The translations under genes and the position numbers were made by a program. Shown in pieces: positions 25,001 to 50,780 of a stretch of DNA of 64,000 nt (the first letter of the stretch is position 1; each line of letters opens with the position of its first letter). A model generated the notes under the pieces. That model was given only the letters and a program-made list of their open reading frames with translations. It did no database searches and was not told where the DNA came from. The stretch is from Anaeramoeba ignava BMAN. Taxonomy: Eukaryota; Protista; Anaeramoebae. The stretch covers positions 558,001 to 622,000 of the forward strand of contig JAPDFW010000059.1 in NCBI GenBank assembly GCA_028826165.1, in the 5' to 3' direction.

Positions 25001-26318
25001 GTGAAAAGCCACATTTCAGATTTTGATGAAAGACTAATTCAACAATTATTAGAGTTTATTAATAATGAACTTCCTAAAGATTCTTTTGTTGAATTTGCAA
25101 CAAATATTCGTAATTTGATTTCTAAAAAATTATCTCCAAAAGAATTAAGACAAAGAGATGATCTTTCAAAAGCTCCTGAACCAAAAGTTCCTAAAAATAT
25201 TTTTAGTAAAACTTTATCTTTTCTTGATATTGATCCTGAAGAAATTGCTAGACAAATTACAATTATTGATTGGAAATTGTTTTCTTTAATTCAAGTATAT
25301 ATTAAGATTATATTCAAAATTAATTTTTATCCGATTTTAATTTTTAATTTTAATATTTAATTTTAATTTCAATTTTAATTTTAATTTTAATTTTAATTTT
25401 AATTTTAATTTTAATTTTAATTTTAATTTTAATTTTAATTTTAATTTTAATTTTAATTTTAATTTTAATTTTAATTTTAATTTTAATTTTAATTTTAATT
25501 TTAATTTTAATTTTAATTTCAAATTTTAATTTTAATTTTAATTTTAATTTTAATTTTAATTTTAATTTTAATTTTAATTTTAATTTTAATTTTAATTTTA
25601 ATTTTAATTTTAATATTAATATTAATTTTAATTTTAATTTTAATTTTAATTTTAAATTTTAATTTTAAATTTAAAGGATAAAGAAATACTCACTTTATCT
25701 TGGCTAAATCCAAGACACAACCATGAATCATCAAACATTTTAGCATTTCTTCATCAAAATGACAAAATTCGAAATTGGGTTTGTTGTTTAATTTTAAGCT
25801 TTGAAAATCAACGACAACGGTCAAAATGCATAACAAGATTAATAAAAGTATCAGAACATTTATTAACATTACACAATTATAGTTCACTTTTAGCAATTTT
25901 CTCAGGATTTTTATCAGCATCAATAGCAAGACTCCAAATCACATGGAGCGAAGTGAACAAAAGAAACAAAGAAACACTTGAACATTTACTTCAATTAGGA
26001 AGTTCTGCATCATTTTATGAAAACTATCATAATAAACTTCGCGAATCAGAATTGCCTTGTGTTCCTTCTCTTAAGGTTCATTTGGAAGAGATTGAACGCA
26101 TTAATTCCCAAAATCCTGATCTTATTGGTCAAATGATTAATTTCCAAAAAAGATGCTCTTTTTATAGAGTTATTTCTCAATTAATGAAATATAAAGATAA
26201 AAATTATGTTTTACAACCTGTTTATCAAATTGCTGTTTTGTTTAATCAATTTCCTTTTGAAACAGAAGAAAAATTATTTGAAAAATCACTTAAAGTTGAA
26301 CCAAAAAGTTCAAATTGA
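22049..26318 (+). CDS. RasGEF with LisH, REM and CDC25 domains
   Basis: About 8 exons (introns approx. 22082-22145, 22305-22394, 23112-23663, 23965-24033, 24117-24175, 24322-24903, 25295-25676). LisH: VISQLLMNYFYQNKFYKTLKALESE. REM: IKAATLNKLI...FLSTYQSFTTPYMLLYKLIQRY. CDC25: DIDPEEIARQITIIDW, PCVPSL, INFQKR, SLKVEP. Confidence 0.88.
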
Positions 26319-34919: not shown

Positions 34920-37900
34920 ATGTCAAGAACACAAGGTTTTTTTTCAAAATAAATACAAATAAACACAAATAAAAACATAAACATAAATAAAAACACAAAC
35001 AAAAACACAAACAAAAACATAAACAAAAACAAAACACAAATAAAAATAAATAAAAACACAAATAAACACAAATAAAAACATAAATACAAATAAACACAAA
35101 TAAAAACACAAATAAATACAAATAAAAACACAAATAAAAACAAAAACACAAATAAATAAAAACAAAAACATAAAAATAAACACAAACAAAAACAAAAATA
35201 TAAAAACATAAATAAATACAAAAATAAAAACAAAAATAAACATAAACATAAACATAAACAAAAACATAAACAAAAATAAAAACATAAATAAAAACATAAA
35301 TAAAAACATAAACATAAACACAAATAAATACAAAAAAACATAAATAAAAACACAAAAATAAAATTCATTATTTTTTATTTTATTTTAGCCGAAATCCAAG
35401 AAATTGAATTCAGTTTGAGACAACCAAAAGAAATCAAAAGAAAACCAGCAATTAAACATGTTATTTCCTTAATGACAGCTGGAAGAGATGTTTCAGCTTT
35501 GTTTTCACCACTTCTTTCATGTTTAAATACTAAAGACATTGAAATCAAGAAGTTAATTTATCTTTACTTAATGCATTATGCAAAATCTAAACCTTCTTTA
35601 GTTGAACAAGCTTTACAATTTATAGTTGTTGTAAATAATTAAAATTAAAATTCAAATTAAAATTAAAATTAAAATTAAAATTAAAATTAAATTTAAAATT
35701 AAAATTAAAATTAAATTAAAATTAAAATTAAAAATTAAAATTTAAAATTAAAATTAATATTAAAATCAAAATTAAAATTAAAATTAAAATTAAAATTAAA
35801 ATCAAAAATTAAAATTAAAATTAAAATTCCAAATTAAAATTAAAATTAAAATTAAAATTTAAAATTAAAATTAAAATTAAAATTAAAAATCAAAATTAAA
35901 ATTAAAATTAAAATTAAAATTAAAATTAAAATTAAAATTAAAATTAAAATTCAAATTAAAATTAAAATTAAAATTAAAATTAAAATTAAAATTAAAATTA
36001 AAATTAAAATTAAAATTCCAAATTAAAATTAAAATTAATATTAAAATTAAAATTAAAATTAAAATTAAAATTAAAATTAAAATTAAAATTAAAATCAAAA
36101 ATAAAATCAAAATTAGAATTAAAATTAAAATTAAAATTAATATTAAAATTCCAAATTAAAATTAAATTTAAAATCAAAATTAAAATTAAAATTAAAATTA
36201 TATAGGATGTTAATGATCAAAATCCTTTGGTTAGAGCTCTTGCTTTAAGAACAATGGCAAGTATTCGAGTTGAAAAATTTACAACTTTTTTGATAGAACC
36301 ATTAAAAGAAGGACTTAAAGTAATTTATTTTTTATTCCTAAAAAAAATAATTTATATTCAAACAAAAAAAAAAAACAAAAAACAAAAAACAAAAAACAAA
36401 AAATAAAAAACAAAAAACAAATAGGATAAAGATCCTTATGTAAGAAAAACAGCAGTTCTTGCTGTTGCTAAACTATTTGATATAAATCCTGAACTTGTCA
36501 AAAAGCATGGATTTGTTGATCGTTTAACAAAGTTACTTTCAGATTCAAATTCTATGGTAGTTTCTAATACTGTTGCAACTTTAATGGAAATTAGTAATGC
36601 AAGTCCAGAACCAGTTTTTCAAGTTACAAAAGAAAACGAGAAATATATAACATCAGCAATTAATGAATCAACAGAGTAATTTATAAAAATTAAAATTAAA
36701 TAAAATTAAATAAAATTAAAATTAAAATTAAAATTAAAATTAAAATAAAAATGAAAATTAAAATTAAAATTAAAATTAAAATTAAATTAAAATTAAAATT
36801 AAAATTAAAATTAAAATTAAAATTAAAATTAAAATTAAAATTAAAATTAAAATTAAAATTAAAATTAAAATTAAAATTAAAATTAAAATTAAAATTAAAA
36901 TTAAAATTAAAATTAAAATTAAAATTATTCAGATGGGGCCAAGTCTTCCTCTTGGAAAGCTTGATGGAATACCAACCTCCATCACCAAAAGAAGCTGAGA
37001 AAATCATTGATCGAGTAGTTCCTCGGTTATCACATAAAAACTCTGCAGTTGTATTGTCATCAGTGCGTTTAATCTTAAAAATGTTCACATTTATCGAAGA
37101 AAAAGAAATCATTCTTCAATTTGCAAGAAAAATGGCACCATCTTTAGTCAGTTTAATGGACAACAATCCCGAAGTTCAATATGTCGCACTTCGAAATATC
37201 AATTTATTTGTTCAACGATTCCCAAAACTATTAATCAAAGATGCAAAAGTATTTTTCTGCAAATACAAAGATCCAGTTTATATCAAAATGGAGAAAGTTG
37301 ATATTCTTGTGATGCTTGCAACGAATTCAAACATCAACGAATTACTGATTGAATTTACAGAATACGCAAAAGAAGTGGATGTTGATTTTGTGCGTAAATC
37401 AGTCAATGCAATTGGGAAATGTGCAATCAAACTTTCCAAAGCAGCACAAGCGTGTGTGAAAGTATTGATAGAATTAGTGAAGACAAAAATCAATTACATT
37501 GTTCAAGAAGTTATTATTGTTGTTCGGGATATTTTCCGAAGATACCCAAATCAATACGAGAGTATCATTGGAGTTTTATGCGAGAATTTACAAAGTTTGG
37601 ATCAACCCGAAGCAAAGGCTTCCATGGTTTGGATCATTGGAGAATATTCAGATCGAATTGACAATGCCGATGAGCTTTTGAAGGCTTTTCTGTTTAATTT
37701 CCATGAAGAAGATCCAGAAGTGCAACTTCAATTATTGACATCCTCAGTGAAATTATTTCTTTCAAAACCAGACGAAGGACAAGAAATTCTAGAGCAAGTT
37801 TTATCAACAGCAACAAACGAATCGGACAATCCCGATCTGCGTGACAGAGCTTTTATGTACTTTCGGCTCGTGGATGCTGGTTTTGAAGAAGCAAACAATA

Positions 37901-39253
37901 TCATTTTAGGAGAAAAACCCTTAATTGATACTATTTCTTTCAAATACGATTCCAAATTGCTCGGTAAACTTTTATCCCAAATCTCAACGCTTTCTAGTGT
38001 GTTCCATAAATTGCCTGAAACTTTTATTAGTGGTGCTAAGGTTTTTGCCCAAGAGGATGATGATAATTCTAATGATGAAGATGATGGTGGAATTTTGCAA
38101 GTTCAAGAAAAAGAAAAAGAAAAGAAAATTGAAAGAGAAAAAAAGAATGAAATGGAAACTCAACAAATTGGTCAGTTGATTAATTTTGCAGATAGTCAAC
38201 CACCACCTATAGTGAAAACTAAATCCATTCCTCAACAACGGAATGATTCTCCTGATCAAGAAATGTTTGAAATGGAGATAGCACAACGAAATGATGTAGA
38301 TACTAAATTTATAACAAATTTGGGATGATAAAATATTTAATTTAATATTTAATTTAATATTTAATATTTAATATTTATTTTGAATATTTAATTTATTTTA
38401 ATATTTTATATTTATATTTAATTTAATATTTAATTTAATATTTTAATATTTAATTTAATATTTTATATTTATTTTAATATTTAATATTTAATTTATTTTA
38501 ATATTTAATATTTAATTTATTTTAATATTTAATTATTAATTGATATAAAAGGAAGTAATTGTTGATAAAGAAGAAATCATTGATGAAGAACGGGGAAAAG
38601 GAATGATAGTAAGCGCAGCATTTCGGCGACGAGAGCAACAAATCTACTTTGATCTTACAATCAGCAATCGAACATCATATCCATTTGGGAAGCTTGCAAT
38701 GGTATTCAACAAGAATTTATTTGGGATGAAACCAAATGCTCAAGTACCGATCACTGGAATCATGCCCGGACAAACAACAGAATGCAGCGTTGTCTGCCCA
38801 ATTATTCAGTCGCATAAATTACCCGCAAATGAAGCTACACTTGAAGTTCAAATTGCAATTAAGAATTTCGAAGTATTTTATACTCAATGCACTTCGCCAA
38901 TGAATATTTTCTTCACAGAAGACGGAAAAATTGAAAAAAGAAACTTTTTAAATCATTGGAAAGCAATTAGTGATGATGATGAACGAATCAAGGAAATCCA
39001 AGGTTTATCTGAAACTAATCCCGATATTTTGAAAATGAAACTTGCAAACTTGAATATCTTCTTTATTGCCAAAAGACAAGAAGGTTCTATTGATATTCTT
39101 TATTTCTCTCTTAAACTTGTTAATTCCGTTATTTTCTTGATAGAATTGAGTATTGACCAGGAAAATCAATCTTGTCAATTGGCAACTCGTTCTCAAGATA
39201 CTTCTTTGATTCCTCTTTTTGAAGAATTTATGGAGAGATTTTTAACAGATTAA
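34920..39253 (+). CDS. AP-1/AP-2 complex beta subunit (beta-adaptin)
   Basis: Exons 34920-34935, 35389-35630, 36206-36319, 36425-36675, 36933-38295 and 38552-39253. VISLMTAGRDVS, KKLIYLYLMHYAK, NPLVRALALRTM, WGQVFLL, EYAKEVDVDFVRKSV, DNPDLRDRA, plus the appendage domain. Confidence 0.93.
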
Positions 39254-40384: not shown

Positions 40385-41440
40385 AACAAAAAAATTAATA
40401 AAATCAAATTAAAAATATTTTATTCCACTTTTTTTTGAAATAAAAAATAAATAAAATTAAATATAATTAATAAATAAATTAATTTAAAAAAATAAATAAA
40501 ATTAAATTAAAACAAAATAAATTTAAATTATTAAAAGAATAAAATTAAAACAAAAAAATTAATAAAATTAAATTAAAAATATTTTATTCCACTTTTTGAA
40601 ATAAAAATAAATTAAAATTAAATATAATTAATTAATAAATTAATTTAAAAAAAATAAAATTAAATCTAAATAAAATTAAAAATAAAAATAATAAAAATAA
40701 TGGATAGTAAAGGGAATAAAAATAAAATCAAATTAAAAATATTTTATTCCACTTTTTGAAATAAAAATAAATCAAAATTAAATATAATTAATAAATAAAT
40801 TAATTTAAAAATAAATAAAATAAAAATTTTTTGAAATTATTAAAAGAATAAATTCAAAAAAAAAAATAAAAATAAAATTAAAAATATAAATAAATAAAAA
40901 TAAAATTTAAAAATAAATAAAATTAAAATTTTAAAATAAAATTAAATTATTAAAAGAATAAATTTAAAACAAAAATTAATAAAATCAAATTAAAAATATT
41001 TTATTCCACTTTTTGAAATAAAAATAAATTAAAAATTAAATATAATTAATAAATAAATTAGTTTAAAAAAATAAATAAAATTAAATTTAGAATAAAATTA
41101 AATTATTAAAAGAATAAATTTAAAATAAAAATTAATAAAATTAAATTAAAAATATTTTATTCCACTTTTTTTTTTGAAATAAAAAAATAAATTAAAATTA
41201 AATATAATTAATAAATAAACTAGTTTAAAAAAATAAATAAAATTAAATTTAGAATAAAATTAAATTATTAAAAGAATAAATTTAAAATAAAAAAAATAAT
41301 AAAATTAAATTAAAAATATTTTATTCCACTTTTTTTTGAAATAAAAAAATAAATTAATTTAAATATAATTAATTAATAAATTAGTTTAAAAAAATAAATA
41401 AAATAAAATTCAAAATAAAATTAAAATAAAAATAAAAAAA
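40385..41440. repeat. ~160-bp tandem array (6 cores) immediately 3' of tRNA-Ala
   Basis: Core AAATTAAAAATATTTTATTCCACTTTTT at about 40424, 40587, 40747, 41005, 41160 and 41324. Confidence 0.88.
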
Positions 41441-41445
41441 AATAA

Positions 41446-41517
41446 TGGATAGTGAGGGAATCGAACCCCCGGCCTCTTGTATGCGAAACAAGCGTTGTAC
41501 CACTCAACTAACTACCC
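41446..41517 (-). tRNA. tRNA-Ala (CGC)
   Basis: GGGTAGT/ACTATCC acceptor with G3:U70, D arm GTTG/CAAC, anticodon arm CTTGT-TTCGCAT-ACAAG, TTCGATT T loop, followed by an oligo-T terminator. Confidence 0.95.
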
Positions 41518-41677
41518 CAAAATAAAATAAAAAACTTTTATTTTTTTTTTTCTTAATTTTTTTTTTTCAAAATATTATTTTTTATATACTTAATTAATTT
41601 TCTTTTTTTATTTAAAATTAATTAAAAAATTTTTTTTTCATTTTTTCTATTTTTCTAAAACTAAAAATTTCATTCTC

Positions 41678-44600
41678 ATGCTTCAAAATTGTTTTAAATT
41701 TGCAATTAAAAAAGAAAATCAAATAGCAAACCAAATAACCAAAAAAATAACAACCGAAATTGATTCAAGACTAAGAAAATATTTTGAGATCAAAGAAGAA
41801 GTACAAAATTCACTTAAAAACAAAAAACCAGTCGTAGCACTTGAAACAACAATTGTAACTCATGGGATGCCTTATCCTAAAAATGTTGAAATAGCTCAAG
41901 AAGTTGAGCAAATTGTGAGAGAAAATGGAGCAACTCCTGCAACTATTGGAGTTATTAATGGAAAAATTCATGTTGGAATGACTAAAAATGATCTTGAATT
42001 CCTTGCTCAACAACGTATTCAAGGAAATGTTACGAAAGTTTCAAGAAGAGATTTATCCTTTGTTGTTTCTCAGAAGAAAAATGGTGGTACAACTGTAAGT
42101 GGTACAATGATGATTAGTCATATGGCTGGAATTCCTGTTTTTGTTACTGGTGGAATAGGTTTGAATCTTTTCTCTTTTCTTTTCTTTTTGAGATCAAAGT
42201 GGATCAAATTTTTCCATTTATTTTGATTTAATTTGAATTTTAATATAATTTTGATTTAATTTTAATATAATTTTGATTTAATTTTAATTTAATTTTGATA
42301 TAATTTTGATATAATTTTGATTTAATTTTGATTTAATTTTGATTTAATTTTGATTTAATTTTGATTTAATTTTGATTTAATTTTGATTTAATTTTAATAT
42401 AATTTTGATTTAATTTTAATATAATTTTGATTTAATTTTAATATAATTTTGATTTAATTTTAATTTAATTTTGATTTAATTTTAATATAATTTTGATTTA
42501 ATTTTGATATAATTTTGATTTAATTTTAATATAATTTTGATTTAATTTTGATTTAATTTTGATTTAATTTTAATTTAATTTTGATTTAATTTTAATTTAA
42601 TTTTGATTTAATTTTAATTTAATATTGATTTAATTTTGATTTAATTTTAATTTAATTTTGATATAATTTTGATTTAATTTTAATTTAATTTTGATTTAAT
42701 TTGGATATAATTTTAATTTAATTTTGATTTAATTTTGATTTGATTTTGATTTAATTTTAATTTGATTTTGATTTAATTTTGATTTAATTTTGATTTAATT
42801 TTGATTTAATTTTGATTTAATTTTGATTTAATTTTGATTTAATTTTGATTTAATTTTAATATAATTTTGGTTTAATTTTAATTTAATTTTAATTTAATTT
42901 TGATTTAATTTTGATTTAATTTTGATTTAATTTTGATTTAATTTTGATTTAATTTTGATTTAATTTTAATATAATTTTGATTTAATTTGGATTTAATTTT
43001 GATTTAATTTTGATTTAATTTGGATTTAATTTTGATTTAATTTTGATTTAATTTTAATTTAATTTTGATTTAATTTTGATTTGATTTTGATTTGATTTTG
43101 ATTTAATTTTAATATAATTTTGATTTAATTTGGATATAATTTTAATTTAATTTTGATTTAATTTTAATTTGATTTTGATTTAATTTTGATTTAATTTTGA
43201 TTTAATTTTGATTTAATTTTGATTTAATTTTGATTTAATTTTGATTTAATTTTGATTTAATTTTAATATAATTTTAATATAATTTGGATTTAATTTTGAT
43301 ATAATTTTGATTTAATTTTAATTTAATTTGGATTTAATTTTAATTTAATTTTGATTTAATTTTGATTTAATTTTGATTTAATTTTGATTTAATTTTGATT
43401 TAATTTTGATTTAATTTTGATTTAATTTTGATTTAATTTTGATTTGATTTTGATTTAATTTTAATTTAATTTTGATTTAATTTTGATTTAATTTTGATTT
43501 AATTTTGATTTAATTTTAATTTAATTTTAATTTAATTTTGATTTAATTTTGATTTGATTTTGATTTAATTTTAATTTAATTTGGATTTAATTTTGATTTA
43601 ATTTTGATTTAATTTTGATTTAATTTTGATTTAATTTTAATTTAATTTTAATTTAATTTTGATTTAATTTTGATTTAATTTTGATTTAATTTTGATTTAA
43701 TTTTGATTTAATTTTGATTTAATTTTGATTTAATTTTGATTTAATTTTGATTTAATTTTGATTTGATTTTGATTTAATTTTTTAATTTAAATTTGATTTA
43801 ATTTTAATTTAATTTTAATTTAATTTTAATTTAAATTTAATTTAATTTAATTTTAATTTAATTTTAATTTAAATTTAATTTAATTTTGATTTAATTTTAA
43901 TTTAAATTTGATTTAATTTTGATTTAATTTTGATTTAATTTTGATTTAATTTTGATTTAATTTTGATTTAATTTTAATTTAATTTTGATTTAATTTTAAT
44001 TTAATTTTGATTTAATTTTAATTTAATTTTGATTTAATTTTGATTTAATTTTAATTTAATTTTGATTTAATTTTAATTTAAATTTAATTTAATTTTGATT
44101 TAATTTTGATTTAAATTTAATTTAATTTTGATTTAATTTTGATTTAATTTTAATTTAATTTTGATTTAATTTTGATTTAATGTTGATTTAATTTTTGATT
44201 TAATTTTGATTTAATTTTGATTTAATTTTAATAATTTTGATTTAATTTTAATTTAATTTTGATTTAATTTTAATTTAATTTTGATTTAATTTAATTTTGA
44301 TTTAATTTTGATTTAATTTTGATTTAATTTTGATTTAATTTTGATTTAATTTTAATTTTGATTTAATTTTTTGATTTAATTTTAATTTAATTTTGATTTA
44401 ATTTTGATTTAATTTTGATTTAATTTTAATTTAATTTGGATTTAATTTTGATTTAATTTTGATTTAATTTTGATTTAATTTTGATTTAATTTTGATTTAA
44501 TTTTGATTTAATTTTGATTTAATTTTAATTTAATTTTGATTTAATTTTGATTTAATTTTGATTTAATTTTGATTTAATTTTGATTTGATTTTGATTTAAT

Positions 44601-45380
44601 TTTGATTTAATTTTGATTTGATTTTAATTTAATTTTGATTTAATTTTGATTTAATTTTGATTTAATTTTGATTTAATTTTGATTTAATTTTGATTTAATT
44701 TTAATTTAATTTGGATTTAATTTTGATTTAATTTTGATTTAATTTTGATTTAATTTTAATTTAATTTTAAGGTGGTGTTCATCGAAATGCTGAAATTACA
44801 ATGGATATTTCAGCAGATCTTATGGAATTAATGCGAACACCAATATGCGTAGTTTGTGCAGGAATGAAATCAATTTTAGACATTCCAAAAACATTAGAAT
44901 TTCTTGAAACAAATGGTGTTCCAACAGTTGGATATCAAGTAAAGAATTTCCCAGCTTTTTTTGTTCATGATTCTGGATTTCCTTCTTCTTGTCGATTAGA
45001 TGATCCAAAATCATGTGCTCAATTAATCAAAACAAATTCAAATCTTGGGATAAAAAGTGGAATTTTAATTGGTGTTCCTGTTCCTAAAAAATATGAAACT
45101 GAAGGTGTTATGATTGAAAATGCGATTCAAAAAGCTATTCAAGAAAGTCAGAATCAAAAAATTTCAGGTAGAGATTTAACTCCTTTTCTTTTAGCAAGAG
45201 TAAACGAATTAACTCAAGGAAAATCTCTTCAAACAAGTAAAATTTATTTATTTGGAAAAATTTTTTAATCTTATTAATTTAATTTTTAATCAAAAATAAA
45301 AAAATAAAAAAGATACACATTTGATCAAAAATAATGCGAAAATTGGAGCTCAAATTGCAGTTGAACTTTCAAAACTTTAA
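41678..45380 (+). CDS. psuG: Pseudouridine-5'-phosphate glycosidase (PsuG/IndA family), standalone
   Basis: Exons 41678-42158, 44772-45236 and 45313-45380. PVVALETTIVTHGMPYP, KVSRRD, GGTTVSGTM, TGGIGGVHR across intron 1, DISADL, GMKSILD, TPFLL, NNAKIG. Confidence 0.93.
42225..44770. repeat. 10-bp (TTTGATTTAA)n tandem array filling PsuG intron 1
   Basis: About 2.5 kb of near-perfect 10-mer, roughly 250 copies. Confidence 0.95.
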
Positions 45381-45460
45381 AAAAAATAAATCTTCTTTTT
45401 CTTTTTCTTTTTCTTTTAAATAAAAAAAAAAAATTTAATAAAAAATAAAAATAAAAAAAA

Positions 45461-45568
45461 CGACGCGAACAGGATTTGAACCTGTGCTCCCAAAGGGAAG
45501 TAGATTTCCATAATTTTTAAAATTTAAATTATTCTAGTCTACCGCCTTAACCACTCGGCCATCGCGTC
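45461..45568 (-). tRNA. tRNA-Ser (AGA) with a 26-nt intron at 37/38
   Basis: GACGCGA/TCGCGTC acceptor, G73, A box TGGCCGAGTGG, anticodon arm GTAGA-CTAGAA|intron 45506-45531|A-TCTAC, long variable arm TTCCCTTTGGGAG, TTCAAAT T loop. Confidence 0.95.
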
Positions 45569-45649
45569 TTAATTAATTTTTTTTTTTCTTTTTCTTATTT
45601 TTTAATTTCAAAAAATTTTATTATTTATATTAAAATATTTTTATTTTCT

Positions 45650-48600
45650 TATTTATTTTTTTATTTAATTTATTTAATAAATATTTTAAAATAAAATTAA
45701 ATAATAATTAATTAATATTTATTAATAAATCTTTTATATTTAATTATTTAAAATAATTTCATTATTAAATATAAATTAATTATTAATTAAAATAATTAAA
45801 TAATTAAATTAAAATATTTTTATTCCACTTTTTATTTAATTAATATTTTAAAACAAAATTAAATAATAATTAATTATTATTTATTAATAAATATTTTATA
45901 TTTAATTATTTAAAATAAATTCCACTTTTTATTATAAATTAATTATTAATCAAAATAATTAAATAATTAAATTAAAATATTTTTATTCCATTTTTATTTA
46001 ATTAATATTTTAAAACAAAATTAAATAATAATTAATTATTATTTATTAATAAATCTTTTATATTTAATTATTTAAAATAAATTCCACTTTTTATTATAAA
46101 TTAATTATTAATCAAAATAATTAAATAATTAAATTAAAATATTTTTATTCCACTTTTTATTTAATAAATATTTTAAAATAAAATTAAATAATAATTAATT
46201 ATTATTTATTAATAAATCTTTTTATATTTAATTATTTAAAATAAATTCCACTTTTTATTATAAATTAATTATTAATCAAATAATCAAATAATTAAATTAA
46301 AATATTTTTATTCCACTTTTTATTTAATAAATATTTTTAAAATAAAATTAAATAATAATTAATTATTATTTATTAATAAATCTTTTATATTTAATTATTT
46401 AAAATAATTTCATTATTAAATATTTATAAATTATTAATTAATTAATCAAAATAATTAAATTAAAATATTTTTATTCCACTTTTTATTTAATTAATATTTT
46501 AAAATAAAATTAAATAATAATTAATTATTATTTATTAATAAATATTTTATATTTAATTATTTAAAATAATTTCATTATTAAATATTTATTAAATTATTAA
46601 TCAAATAATTAAATAATTAAATTAAAATATTTTTATTCCACTTTTTATTTAATTAATATTTTTAAAATAAAATTAAATAATAATTAATTATTATTTATTA
46701 ATAAATCTTTTATATTTAATTATTTAAAATAATTTCATTATTAAATATTTATTAATTATTAATTAAATAATTAAATAATTAAATAATTAAATTAAAATAT
46801 TTTTATTCCACTTTTTATTTAATAAATATTTTAAAAACAAAATTAAATAATAATTAATTATTATTTATTAATAAATATTTTATATTTAATTATTTAAAAT
46901 AAATTCATTATTAAATATTTATTAATTATTAATCAAAATAATTAAATAATTAAATTAAATTATTTTTATTCCACTTTTTTTATTTAATTAATATTTTAAA
47001 ACAAAATTAAATAATAATTAATTAATATTTATTAATAAATCTTTTTATATTTAATTATTTAAAATAAATTCCACTTTTTATTATAAATTAATTATTAATT
47101 AAATTAATTAAATAATTAAATTAAAATATTTTTATTCCACTTTTTATTTAATAAATAATTTTAAAATAAAATTAAATAATAATTAATTAATATTTATTAA
47201 TAAATATTTTATATTTAATTATTTAAAATAAATTCATTATTAAATACTTATAAATTATTAATTAAAATAATTAAATAATTAAATTAAAATATTTTTATTC
47301 CACTTTTTATTTAATAAATATTTTAAAATTAAATTAAATAATAATTAATTAATATTTATTAATAAATATTTTATATCTAATTATTTAAAATAAATTCCAC
47401 TTTTTATTATAAATTAATTATTAATCAAAATAATTAAATAATTAAATTAAAATATTTTTATTCCACTTTTTATTTAATAAATAATTTAAAACAAAATTAA
47501 ATAATAATTAATTATTATTTATTAATAAATCTTTTATATTTAATTATTTAAAATAAATTCATTATTAAATATAAATTAATTGTTAATTAAATAATTAAAT
47601 AATTAAATTAAAATATTTTTATTCCACTTTTTATTTAATTAATAAATATTTTAAAATTAAATTAAATAATAATTAATTAATATTTATTAATAAATCTTTT
47701 ATATTTAATTATTTAAAATAAATTCCACTTTTTATTATAAATTAATTATTAATTAATTAATTAAATAATTAAATTAAAATATCTTTATTCCACTTTTTAT
47801 TTTAATAAATATTTTAAAATAAAATTAAATAATAATTAATTAATATTTATTAATAAATATTTTATATTTAATTATTCAAAATAAATTCATTATTAAATAC
47901 TTATAAATTATTAATCAAAATAATTAAATAATTAAATTAAAATATTTTTATTCCACTTTTTAATTTAATAAATATTTTAAAAATAAAATTAAATAATAAT
48001 TAATTATTATTTATTAATAAATCTTTTATATTTAATTATTTAAAATAAATTCATTATTAAATACTTATAAATTATTAATTAATTAATTAAATAATTAAAT
48101 TAAAAATATTTTTATTCCACTTTTTATTTAATTAATATTTTAAAAATAAAATTAAATAATAATTAATTATTATTTATTAATAAATATTTTATTTTTAATT
48201 ATTTAAAATAAATTTCATTATTAAATATTTATAAATTATTAATTAATTAATCAAAATAATTAAATTAAAATATTTTTATTCCACTTTTTATTTAATTAAT
48301 ATTTTAAAATAAAATTAAATAATAATTAATTATTATTTATTAATAAATATTTTATATTTAATTATTTAAAAATAATTTCATTATTAAATATTTATTAATT
48401 ATTAATCAAATAATTAAATAATTAAATTAAAATATTTTTATTCCACTTTTTATTTAATTAATATTTTTAAAATAAAATTAAATAATAATTAATTATTATT
48501 TATTAATAAATCTTTTATATTTAATTATTTAAAAATAAATTCATTATTAAATATTTATTAATTATTAATAAAAATAATTAAATTAAAATATTTTTATTCC

Positions 48601-49545
48601 ACTTTTTATTTAATTAATATTTTAAAATAAAATTAAAAATAATAATAATTAATTATTATTTATTAATAAATCTTTTATATTTAATTATTTAAAATAAATT
48701 CATTATTAAATATTTATTAATTATTAATCAAAATAATTAAATAATTAAATTAAAATATTTTTATTCCACTTTTTATTTAATTAATATTTTAAAACAAAAA
48801 TTAAATAATAATTAATTAATATTTATTAATAAATCTTTTTATATTTAATTATTTTAAAATAAATTCCACTTTTTATTATAAATTAATTATTAATCAAATA
48901 ATCAAATAATTAAATTAAAATATTTTTATTCCACTTTTTATTTAATAAATATTTTTAAAATTAAATTAAATAATAATTAATTAATATTTATTAATAAATA
49001 TTTTATATTTAATTATTTAAAATAAATTTCATTAAATATTTATTAATTATTAATCAAATAATTAAATAATTAAATTAAAATATTTTTATTCCACTTTTTA
49101 TTTAATTAATATTTTAAAATAAAATTAAATAATAATTAATTATTATTTATTAATAAATCTTTTTATATTTAATTATTTAAAATAAATTCATTATTAAATA
49201 TTTATAAATTATTAATCAAAATAATTAAATAATTAAATTAAAATATTTTTATTCCACTTTTTATTTAATAAATATTTTAAAATAAAATTAAATAATAATT
49301 AATTAATATTTATTAATAAATATTTTATATTTAATTATTTAAAATAAATTCATTATTAAATATTAATAAATTATTAATCAAAATAATTAAATAATTAAAT
49401 TAAAATATTTTTATTCCACTTTTTATTTAATTAATATTTTAAAATAAAATTAAATAATAATTAATTATTATTTATTAATAAATCTTTTATATTTAATTAT
49501 TTAAAATAAATTCCACTTTTTATTATAAATTAATTATTAATTAAA
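45650..49545. repeat. ~163-bp satellite array (about 23-24 units) immediately 5' of tRNA-Ser
   Basis: Core AAATTAAAATATTTTTATTCCACTTTTT recurs at about 45823, 45986, 46148, 46311 ... 49252 and 49415, spaced about 163 bp apart. Confidence 0.95.
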
Positions 49546-49687
49546 TTGTTCTTTTTTTTTGTTAATTTAATTTAATTTAATTAAATAAAAAAGGAAAAGA
49601 AAAAAAATTTTTTTTTCAAATTTTTATTTTTCATTTTTCAATTTATAAAAAAAAAAAAAAAAAAAAAAAGATTTATTAATAAATAAA

Positions 49688-50780
49688 ATGGTAAGTGTAT
49701 TTTAAAAAAAAAAAAGTATTAACGCATAGAATAATTAAAATTTAATATTTAAAAAAAATTAATTATTAAAAATAGACAGACGAAATTCCAGAAAACACAC
49801 CAACATTCAAGATTATTTTAGTTGGAGATGGAGGAGTTGGCAAAACAACATTTGTAAAAAGACATCTTTCAGGAGAGTTCCGTAAAGAATATATTGGTAA
49901 GTTGATTAAAAAAAAAATAAAAAGGAGAAAAAAAAAAAGAAAATAAATTAAAAAGGAGAAAAAAAACTGATTAAACAAAATTAATATAAATCAAATACAA
50001 AAATAGCAACTGTTGGAGTTGAAGTTCATCCACTTGTTTTTTACACAACAAAATGCCCAATCTGCTTTAACGTATGGGATACAGCAGGACAGGTAATAAA
50101 AATAAAAATAAAAATAAAAATAAAAATAAAAATAATAAAAATAAAAATAAAAATTAAAATAAAAATAAAATAAAAAATTTTAACAGGAAAGATTTGGTGG
50201 ACTTAGAGATGGATATTATATTGAAGGTGATGCTGCTATTATTATGTTTGATGTAACTTCTCCTGAAACTTATGGAAATGTTCCTGTTTGGTATAGAGAT
50301 ATTGTTCGTGTTTGTGAGAATATTCCTATGGTTCTTTGTGGTAATAAGGTTGATGTTAAAGACAGAAAAGTTCGTGCTAAGCAAATCTCTTTCCATCGTA
50401 GAAAGAATATTCCTTATTTTGATATTTCTGCTAAATCTAATTATAACTTTGAAAAACCTTTCCTTTATCTTGCTCGAAGACTTTTAGGGTTTGTTATTTA
50501 TTTTATTATTTAATTAGAATAATTTTTCATTCCTTTCTTGTTATTTCAAAATTTTTTTATTAATTTTTCATTCCTTTCTTGTCATTTCAAAATTTTTTTA
50601 TTAATTTTTTCATTATTTTTTATTTATATTTTTAGTGATCCAAATTTAACTCTTGAAAAAGCTCCTGCTTTAGCCCCTCCAGTTGTAGATCTTGATCAAG
50701 AAGCTATGATTGCTAATGAGAAGGAATTGAAAGAGGCTCAGAATTATGAACTTCCTGATGAAGATGAGGATAATTTTTAA
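49688..50780 (+). CDS. RAN: Ran GTPase
   Basis: Exons 49688-49690 (ATG only), 49776-49896, 50007-50092, 50187-50488 and 50636-50780. [57 protein letters not shown], acidic tail LPDEDEDNF. Confidence 0.97.

Follow-up and report, generated by a model that had tools for sequence, protein, structure and literature searches.

Tandem arrays of nearly nucleosome-length units beside tRNA, 5S rRNA and U6 genes of Anaeramoeba ignava, and a short box that many of them share

In a 64-kb stretch of the very AT-rich, 42.8-Mb genome assembly of Anaeramoeba ignava BMAN (positions 558001-622000 of contig JAPDFW010000059.1, here C1; the whole stretch is referred to as the window and positions are counted from its first letter), two tandem arrays of long repeat units lie beside two tRNA genes, and the question raised by this locus is whether they are part of a wider repeat system tied to tRNA genes and, if so, of what kind. 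An earlier reading made from the letters alone (the sequence-only reading) had proposed such a system, and the results of Tandem Repeats Finder (TRF) and ARAGORN agree with it on the presence of both long-period arrays beside tRNA genes. Array A (40385-41445, + strand) is comprised of about 6.5 AT-rich units of 160-162 bp (TRF periods 160 and 162, 87-90% matches), and it touches the 3' end of tRNA-Ala(CGC), because the array ends at 41445 and the gene spans 41446-41517 on the - strand (ARAGORN; Rfam RF00005, 67.7 bits, C1:599446-599517). Array B (45669-49546, + strand; TRF period 163, 23.8 copies, 92% matches) begins 100 bp upstream of tRNA-Ser(GGA), which is located at 45461-45568 on the - strand, contains a 26-nucleotide (nt) intron, and was found by ARAGORN with introns allowed but missed in its bacterial mode. 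Two unit subtypes alternate in array B, forming a 325-bp higher-order period, and its + strand is nearly free of G (GC skew -0.98). No further array with a period of at least 100 bp is present within the 64-kb window; the statement that all remaining repeats are 6-12 bp long was nearly right, those observed being microsatellites of 6-18 bp and their multiples. Based upon the results described below, we consider it on balance probable that arrays A and B are members of a family of AT-rich satellites that is spread across the genome, forms preferentially at the flanks of genes transcribed by RNA polymerase III (Pol III) and carries a putative factor-binding box.

The two arrays have a short sequence in common. 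A 27-bp core had been reported from both of them on the same (+) strand and it is present there, its copies differing by two single-base indels. Array A contains six exact copies of the 13-mer core TATTCCACTTTTT, all on the + strand (at 40421, 40585, 40745, 41002, 41158, and 41322), and array B contains 22 exact copies plus, in one of its subtypes, eight copies of a second core, AATTCCACTTTTT; with at most one mismatch, the 13-mer occurs 40 times in the window, where 1.2 copies are expected. In the 42.8 Mb of the assembly, 2985 exact copies of TATTCCACTTTTT were found (1547 on the + and 1438 on the - strand) vs 3 of the reversed control, and the corresponding numbers for copies with no more than one mismatch are 7657 and 337. 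The core is found both as single copies and in many arrays of differing period, and pairs of exact cores are spaced 143-173 bp apart in 959 cases and 53-78 bp apart in 254 cases, the controls giving 0. Many of the arrays are just 0.3-2 kb in size; their periods range from 36 to 480 bp and the number of copies reaches 38.

For 31 arrays with at least three copies, a consensus unit was built separately for each array, anchored on the 10-mer ATTCCACTTT. Conservation across these consensuses is confined to the 15-bp box TTTATTCCACTTTTT, which is invariant; hence, although the 27-bp core is common to arrays A and B, only 15 bp of shared sequence stand when other arrays are included. Outside of TTTATTCCACTTTTT the units consist of A/T without positional signal, save for a weak TTAAAATATTTT directly upstream of the box in many arrays. 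Consensus units from different tRNA families show 66-75% identity, which is the noise level for gapped alignments of two-letter DNA, while the box is identical at 14-15 of its 15 positions in every pair of arrays compared, and it usually occurs once per unit. The comparison of box and unit within single arrays is uninformative, as the arrays are 92-97% homogeneous and the cutting of units was anchored on the box. In their organization, these arrays combine the features of a box-bearing satellite, namely head-to-tail units of approximately nucleosome length in which a short box is kept among otherwise divergent units, with that of a minisatellite family, in which differing units at different loci share one core of 10-15 bp.

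The association of the core with tRNA genes was examined at 40 tRNA loci, which were the top scorers of an Rfam scan of the genome, taken with about 2 kb on each side and chosen without regard to the motif. At 25 of these loci, where about 1-2 are expected, an exact copy of the 10-mer ATTCCACTTT is found no farther than 400 bp from the tRNA; when paralogues are grouped, 18 of approximately 29 tRNA families are covered. The background for a random point, which was estimated from how densely core clusters occur on C1 and how far they extend, is roughly 3-5%, and the binomial probabilities at p = 0.025 are 1e-30 for the loci and 1e-22 for the families, remaining vanishingly small at 5%. The enrichment of the core near tRNA genes, which had been predicted, is thus borne out. 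At 27 of the 40 loci, a tRNA has a long-period array no more than 200 bp away, counting arrays with periods of 40 bp or more, 2.5 or more copies, and TRF scores of 200 or more. Most unit periods are in the range of 143-178 bp or are double or triple such a length, and the spacing of successive cores has its main mode at 150-169 bp (108 of 327) and a second at 315-329 bp. Within the roughly 2 kb covered on each side, arrays that contain the core have a median length of 1448 bp and exceed those that lack it, with a median of 628 bp (Mann-Whitney p = 0.005). At most loci, including the window, one intact tRNA gene stands beside gene-free units; at L019, L030, L035, and L040 (the labels are our handles for loci) the tRNA and its array are repeated twice.

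The association extends to other Pol III genes. At five of six 5S rRNA loci, 2-3 sense-oriented boxes are located directly downstream of the gene, the sixth locus being cut by a contig end. Two diverged families of 5S genes differ in box spacing (24 vs 31 bp) and in their downstream spacers, and in both of them the first box starts 25 bp past the gene. The reiteration of boxes in one polarity is seen at these genes, whereas the polarity at tRNA genes is mixed. The single U6 gene has arrays on both sides: units of 161 bp follow it, units of 148 bp precede it, and units of 178 bp lie still farther upstream. In the units downstream of U6 a different box, TTTTTATCCGATTTT, is found, and the second of these units duplicates the U6 3' end and terminator. 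This second box, TTTATCCGATTTT, is common to the U6 downstream array and to a 322-bp array upstream of tRNA-Gln(CTG); it occurs in 937 copies vs 0 of its control, mostly in small clusters, and one copy is found in the window at 25326-25338. The proposed tRNA-associated repeat system is therefore real, genome-wide and linked to tRNA genes, but the link covers Pol III genes generally, 5S and U6 included, and it is not exclusive. That most tRNA genes as well as the 5S and U6 genes stand beside repeats of roughly nucleosome length, most of them with a box, suggests either a DNA-binding factor or a repeat-making process that is tied to Pol III.

As a separate observation, the 5S genes recur approximately every 4 kb (L071-L076; C56:141-150 kb, C87, and C77), each of them beside a coding-like repeat of 132 bp (44 codons).

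A derivation of the box from sequences internal to Pol III genes was considered and rejected. The possibility that it is a B box or an extra-TFIIIC site, like the IR and COC sites of S. pombe, fails as it has only ATTCC in common with the B boxes of this species (GGTTCGATTCC and similar), and the B-box consensus GGTTCGANTCC, including G53 and C56, is not matched by the box, which is without GG and C-G. Nor does any tRNA contain the box, the nearest sequence being GATTCCAG in tRNA-Thr.

Information on how the arrays arise comes from gene fragments that they contain. When each tRNA was compared with its own locus by short BLAST searches, tRNA fragments were found inside the arrays at 10 of the sampled tRNA loci, 9 of which were informative; a 14-nt match to tRNA-Ser in the window, which is probably due to chance, was excluded. 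Upstream arrays contain the tRNA from nt 1 to nt 15-32 (Trp, Gln(TTG) at three loci, Thr, Gly, and Gln(CTG)), and downstream arrays contain nt 54-74, in the form of exact 3' fragments of 18-21 nt at two Ala(TGC) loci (L033 and L034). The end of a unit thus falls within the gene in many cases, close to the end of the A box when the unit comes from the 5' flank and in the B box or its vicinity when it comes from the 3' flank, and breakpoints in these positions show that the arrays expand through tandem duplication of local flank DNA. Within array A, a degenerate 3' piece of tRNA-Ala could be read at 40695-40720 on the - strand, covering the approximately 16 nt at the end of the gene, which begin with the 3' half of the B box; it is of the same kind as the fragments in other downstream arrays and marks a duplication with its breakpoint inside the tRNA-Ala gene. 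Paralogous tRNA loci share both tRNA and array at 76-97% identity, from which it follows that arrays persist and are copied along with the gene. Such fragments record where duplications broke off relative to the A and B boxes, and they would provide a natural readout of conflict between replication and transcription at TFIIIC-bound genes.

From these results we infer a process in which TTTATTCCACTTTTT would be the recognition site of a putative sequence-specific DNA-binding factor. The trigger would be replication or repair synthesis that stalls at a factor-bound Pol III gene, and possibly also at a bound box, whereupon the stalled strand would re-copy about one nucleosome or Okazaki-fragment length of the flank. 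The bound factor may serve in nucleosome phasing or insulation, or as a terminator or fork barrier of the type present at rRNA genes, or it may merely favour the growth of arrays. An array of putative binding sites, which the sequence-only reading had among its proposals, is our best guess at function. A more far-reaching version, that a dedicated factor acting through TTTATTCCACTTTTT, and perhaps TTTATCCGATTTT, marks Pol III genes, organizes phased nucleosomes or barriers to forks or transcription, and drives satellite growth, is put forward as a tentative possibility that we think more likely wrong than right; such a factor and its sites would parallel, at Pol III genes, the CENP-B box of centromeric satellite or the Sal and Reb1 boxes of rRNA genes. 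The 15-bp box provides a concrete handle for finding the putative factor.

A number of observations weigh against a box family dedicated to Pol III genes. On C1, eight further core clusters were read, four of them arrays and four single copies. Only one of these four arrays outside the window adjoins a tRNA, tRNA-Val (L059); the others fill an intron (L041), divergent intergenic/promoter DNA of RNA polymerase II (Pol II) genes (L047), and an intergenic 12-bp microsatellite (L053), and two of the four single copies are in coding-like DNA. Apart from tRNA-Val, no Rfam match at E <=1 that could indicate a hidden RNA gene was obtained at these C1 clusters. Further, a long-period array abutting the tRNA is missing from 13 of the 40 loci, and at least six have a tRNA-adjacent long-period array that lacks the core, some with periods of 144-152 bp. 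In view of the arrays in introns and Pol II regions and of the boxless arrays at tRNA genes, the box family is strongly enriched at Pol III genes but not specific for them. The nearest core is 25-434 bp from the tRNA, upstream or downstream and sense or antisense without rule, and so variable a placement is a poor fit for a polar barrier or a promoter element; with regard to neighbouring Pol II genes, as judged from crude open reading frame (ORF) calls, box orientation shows no clear bias either. One-mismatch copies exceed exact ones by approximately 1.5:1 and therefore conservation of the box is not absolute. Lastly, the units show no 10-bp A/T periodicity of the kind associated with nucleosome positioning, just sub-periods of 5.5 and 12.25 bp that are typical of the microsatellites of this genome, so that "nucleosome length" is here a statement about the number of base pairs.

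Several of these points would be expected if the arrays were the product of neutral churn, in which Pol III genes are fragile and the box is a functionless sequence that came from one ancestral flank, was spread by tRNA duplication and became homogenised within arrays. The abundance of one-mismatch variants and the existence of coreless arrays accord with such churn, as do the passenger gene fragments with their varying breakpoints, the turnover of arrays between paralogues (L025 and L026, and likewise L040 and L037, differ in the presence of the core), and the saturation of this genome with micro- and minisatellites. However, the spacers of different tRNA families are at noise level while the 15-mer in them is identical despite strong A/T drift, and homogenisation inside one array cannot keep separate loci alike. 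The box is also present beside 5S genes and in introns that are unrelated to tRNA flanks, and singleton boxes are far above chance. Neutral churn is thus in our view rather unlikely. An assembly artefact, in which low-complexity DNA was mis-assembled, is scarcely credible: long-read assemblies can get the lengths of arrays wrong, but the same architecture is seen at more than 30 loci on many contigs, in arrays whose units vary from one to the next and form higher-order subtypes, in which gene fragments are embedded, and whose paralogous copies have diverged.

It had also been suggested that the arrays are relics of an element that targets tRNA genes, in which case the box would be an amplified terminal sequence. 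The strong association with Pol III genes and the dispersed single copies of the box are in keeping with this, and, to judge from two reports, the Dictyostelium elements TRE5/TRE3 and DGLT-A and yeast Ty3 likewise concentrate repetitive DNA at distances of no more than a few hundred bp from the tRNA genes of compact genomes (PMC5006619, PMC5911963). Unlike those elements, the A. ignava units are made of host flank and gene fragments, including pieces of neighbouring genes, they keep no fixed offset, side or orientation relative to the tRNA, and they are A/T-only and without coding capacity; no element ORFs were found. A sample of the ten largest ORFs near tRNAs contained no reverse transcriptase or integrase, and consisted of four RCC1-BTB genes, Na/Ca exchanger, one pogo-like DDE transposase, and three with weak or no match. 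Pogo-like transposases are the protein family from which CENP-B derives. The pogo-like ORF of the sample (DDE_1, HTH_Tnp_Tc5; L021:2-1444, minus strand) is separated by about 250 bp from a tRNA-Lys(CTT) array and speaks to that extent for a mobile element; it was rejected as the source of the box, since it is not included in the segment that the paralogues have in common and no box is present at its end. A relic of a targeting element is accordingly an improbable origin for these arrays. The centromere role that was proposed along with it has no support, and the arrays are scattered (about eight on the 1.8-Mb C1 and three on the 0.84-Mb C2, among the matches listed). Spread along contigs in this way, with nucleosome-length units and one conserved short box in each, they could in principle be a dispersed chromosomal element, namely (holo)centromere units or replication origins, whose box would correspond to a CENP-B box or an origin consensus. 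This is very improbable, given that many arrays span only 0.3-2 kb, lie in introns or promoters and have periods from 36 to 480 bp, and that they track Pol III genes with uneven spacing. The reading that we favour thus remains that of a satellite family which forms preferentially at Pol III gene flanks.

The closest known system is that of the tRNA gene arrays of Entamoeba, an AT-rich amoeboid protist in which, according to the parts of the report drawn upon here, tRNA genes and some 5S genes are organized in locus-specific tandem repeats that include nearly all tRNA genes, make up more than 10% of the genome, and contain the gene within the repeat unit (Tawari et al., 2008; PMC2652664). The function of those arrays is described there as not known, neither a matrix-attachment nor a telomere role having been confirmed (PMC2652664). 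A. ignava resembles Entamoeba in having tRNA and some 5S genes amid tandem repeats that differ between loci in the genome of an AT-rich amoeba. In contrast to Entamoeba, however, the gene in A. ignava is usually single and outside the repeated unit, the repeat being its flank; the units are approximately 160 bp instead of microsatellite-like short repeats; and tRNA genes without an array are common (13 of the 40 loci). A 15-bp box is common to unrelated arrays in A. ignava, whereas the parts of the Entamoeba report considered mention no common box (PMC2652664). The lineages of Entamoeba and of A. ignava (Anaeramoebae, related to Metamonada) are unrelated, and a comparison between them may explain why repeats are built around tRNA genes in AT-rich amoebae. 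The terms "tRNA", "satellite" and "tandem repeat" were looked for in the paper on the Anaeramoeba genome, and none of them is present there.

With respect to other repeats and boxes, the likenesses are partial. The units of alpha-satellite are of nucleosome length and the CENP-B box is a short protein-binding box within otherwise divergent units; A. ignava arrays share the unit length and the short conserved box, which here is known from sequence alone, but they are short, occur in large numbers at dispersed sites, and are tied to Pol III genes. Human minisatellite loci, as Jeffreys et al. reportedly observed in 1985, share a GC-rich core of 10-15 bp, which is regarded as a recognition signal for unequal exchange. 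The presence of one short core at many loci with different units is the same in A. ignava; unlike the GC-rich human core, which has no link to a gene class, the core here is located in A/T-only DNA and is 10-40-fold enriched beside Pol III genes. The Sal box, bound by TTF-I, and the Reb1 sites are polar, reiterated terminator or fork-barrier boxes that flank the highly transcribed rRNA genes of RNA polymerase I, directly downstream and in some cases also upstream. The 2-3 sense boxes that begin 25 bp past the 5S genes are similar to these, whereas the mixed box orientation at tRNA genes and arrays of up to 38 copies are not. Pol III genes also act as chromatin boundaries, pause sites of replication forks and safe havens for mobile elements. 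To our knowledge, no genome has previously been described in which most Pol III genes are flanked by nucleosome-length satellites that share one short box. What is new is the 15-bp box that the arrays have in common, together with the second box, the inclusion of 5S and U6 genes in the pattern, and the figures on enrichment.

Outside of this genome, a metagenome scan for two boxes spaced 139-169 bp apart gave one match, on a GC-rich contig with an unrelated tail of short-period repeats. This contig (Ga0065711_1065879:5000-5783) is 63% GC and its AT-rich tail is made up of TTTTCATTCC-type repeats that happen to contain the core; the contig looks unrelated and is possibly chimeric. At the beta-adaptin locus of A. 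flamelloides (26 kb) no tRNA, array or box was found, and as synteny is not kept there, this is uninformative either way.

In the window, the gene for a beta-adaptin-like protein b is represented by a 525-amino-acid ORF at 36751-38328, which shows 100% identity to an A. ignava protein in NCBI. On the other side of the arrays is a Ran GTPase gene, with a Ras-family profile match and a start that was read at 49688; array B ends about 140 bp short of this start and fills the gap between tRNA-Ser and the Ran promoter. Arrays A and B bracket a gene for pseudouridine catabolism, as had been noted: psuG (PsuG/IndA family, pseudouridine-5'-phosphate glycosidase; 41678-45380, + strand) lies between both tRNA genes, with exons at 41678-42158, 44772-45236, and 45313-45380. 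Exons 1 and 2, searched singly and unjoined, match PF04227 with E values of 6e-53 and 8e-61 at profile positions 1-118 and 120-272, respectively; the splice sites and exon 3 were read from the sequence. The first intron (2.6 kb), which splits the Pfam domain at profile position 118/120, consists almost entirely of a 2.5-kb minisatellite of 11-bp units (TTTGATTTAAT x 232; 42227-44768, + strand; TRF score 4148) that is outside of the core-bearing family.

Some additional features of the tRNA genes and their surroundings were observed. The heptamer ATAAGAA, in runs such as AAAAATAAGAAAAAA, is present 29-44 bp upstream of 25 of 45 tRNAs (in the window at 41518-41600 and 45569-45650; loci L002-L040) and anywhere in the upstream 100 bp of 29 of the 45, its reverse complement occurring there 0 times, and TATAAATAAT is often found near -60; the ATAAGAA element looks like an upstream Pol III promoter element. 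Clusters of eight tRNA-like genes with near-identical acceptor and T arms are present at L001 (C104:286000-294000) and L036 (C93:541700-547300), where the anticodons differ from gene to gene (Gln, Asp, Met, Glu, and Trp at L001; Glu, Asp, Gly, and Val at L036), and at L036 three of the tRNA-like genes are followed by an antisense core at a distance of 25 bp and a fourth by one at 74 bp. The RCC1-BTB genes, which account for four of the ten largest ORFs beside tRNAs (L010, L015, L023, and L027), may often be neighbours of tRNA genes.

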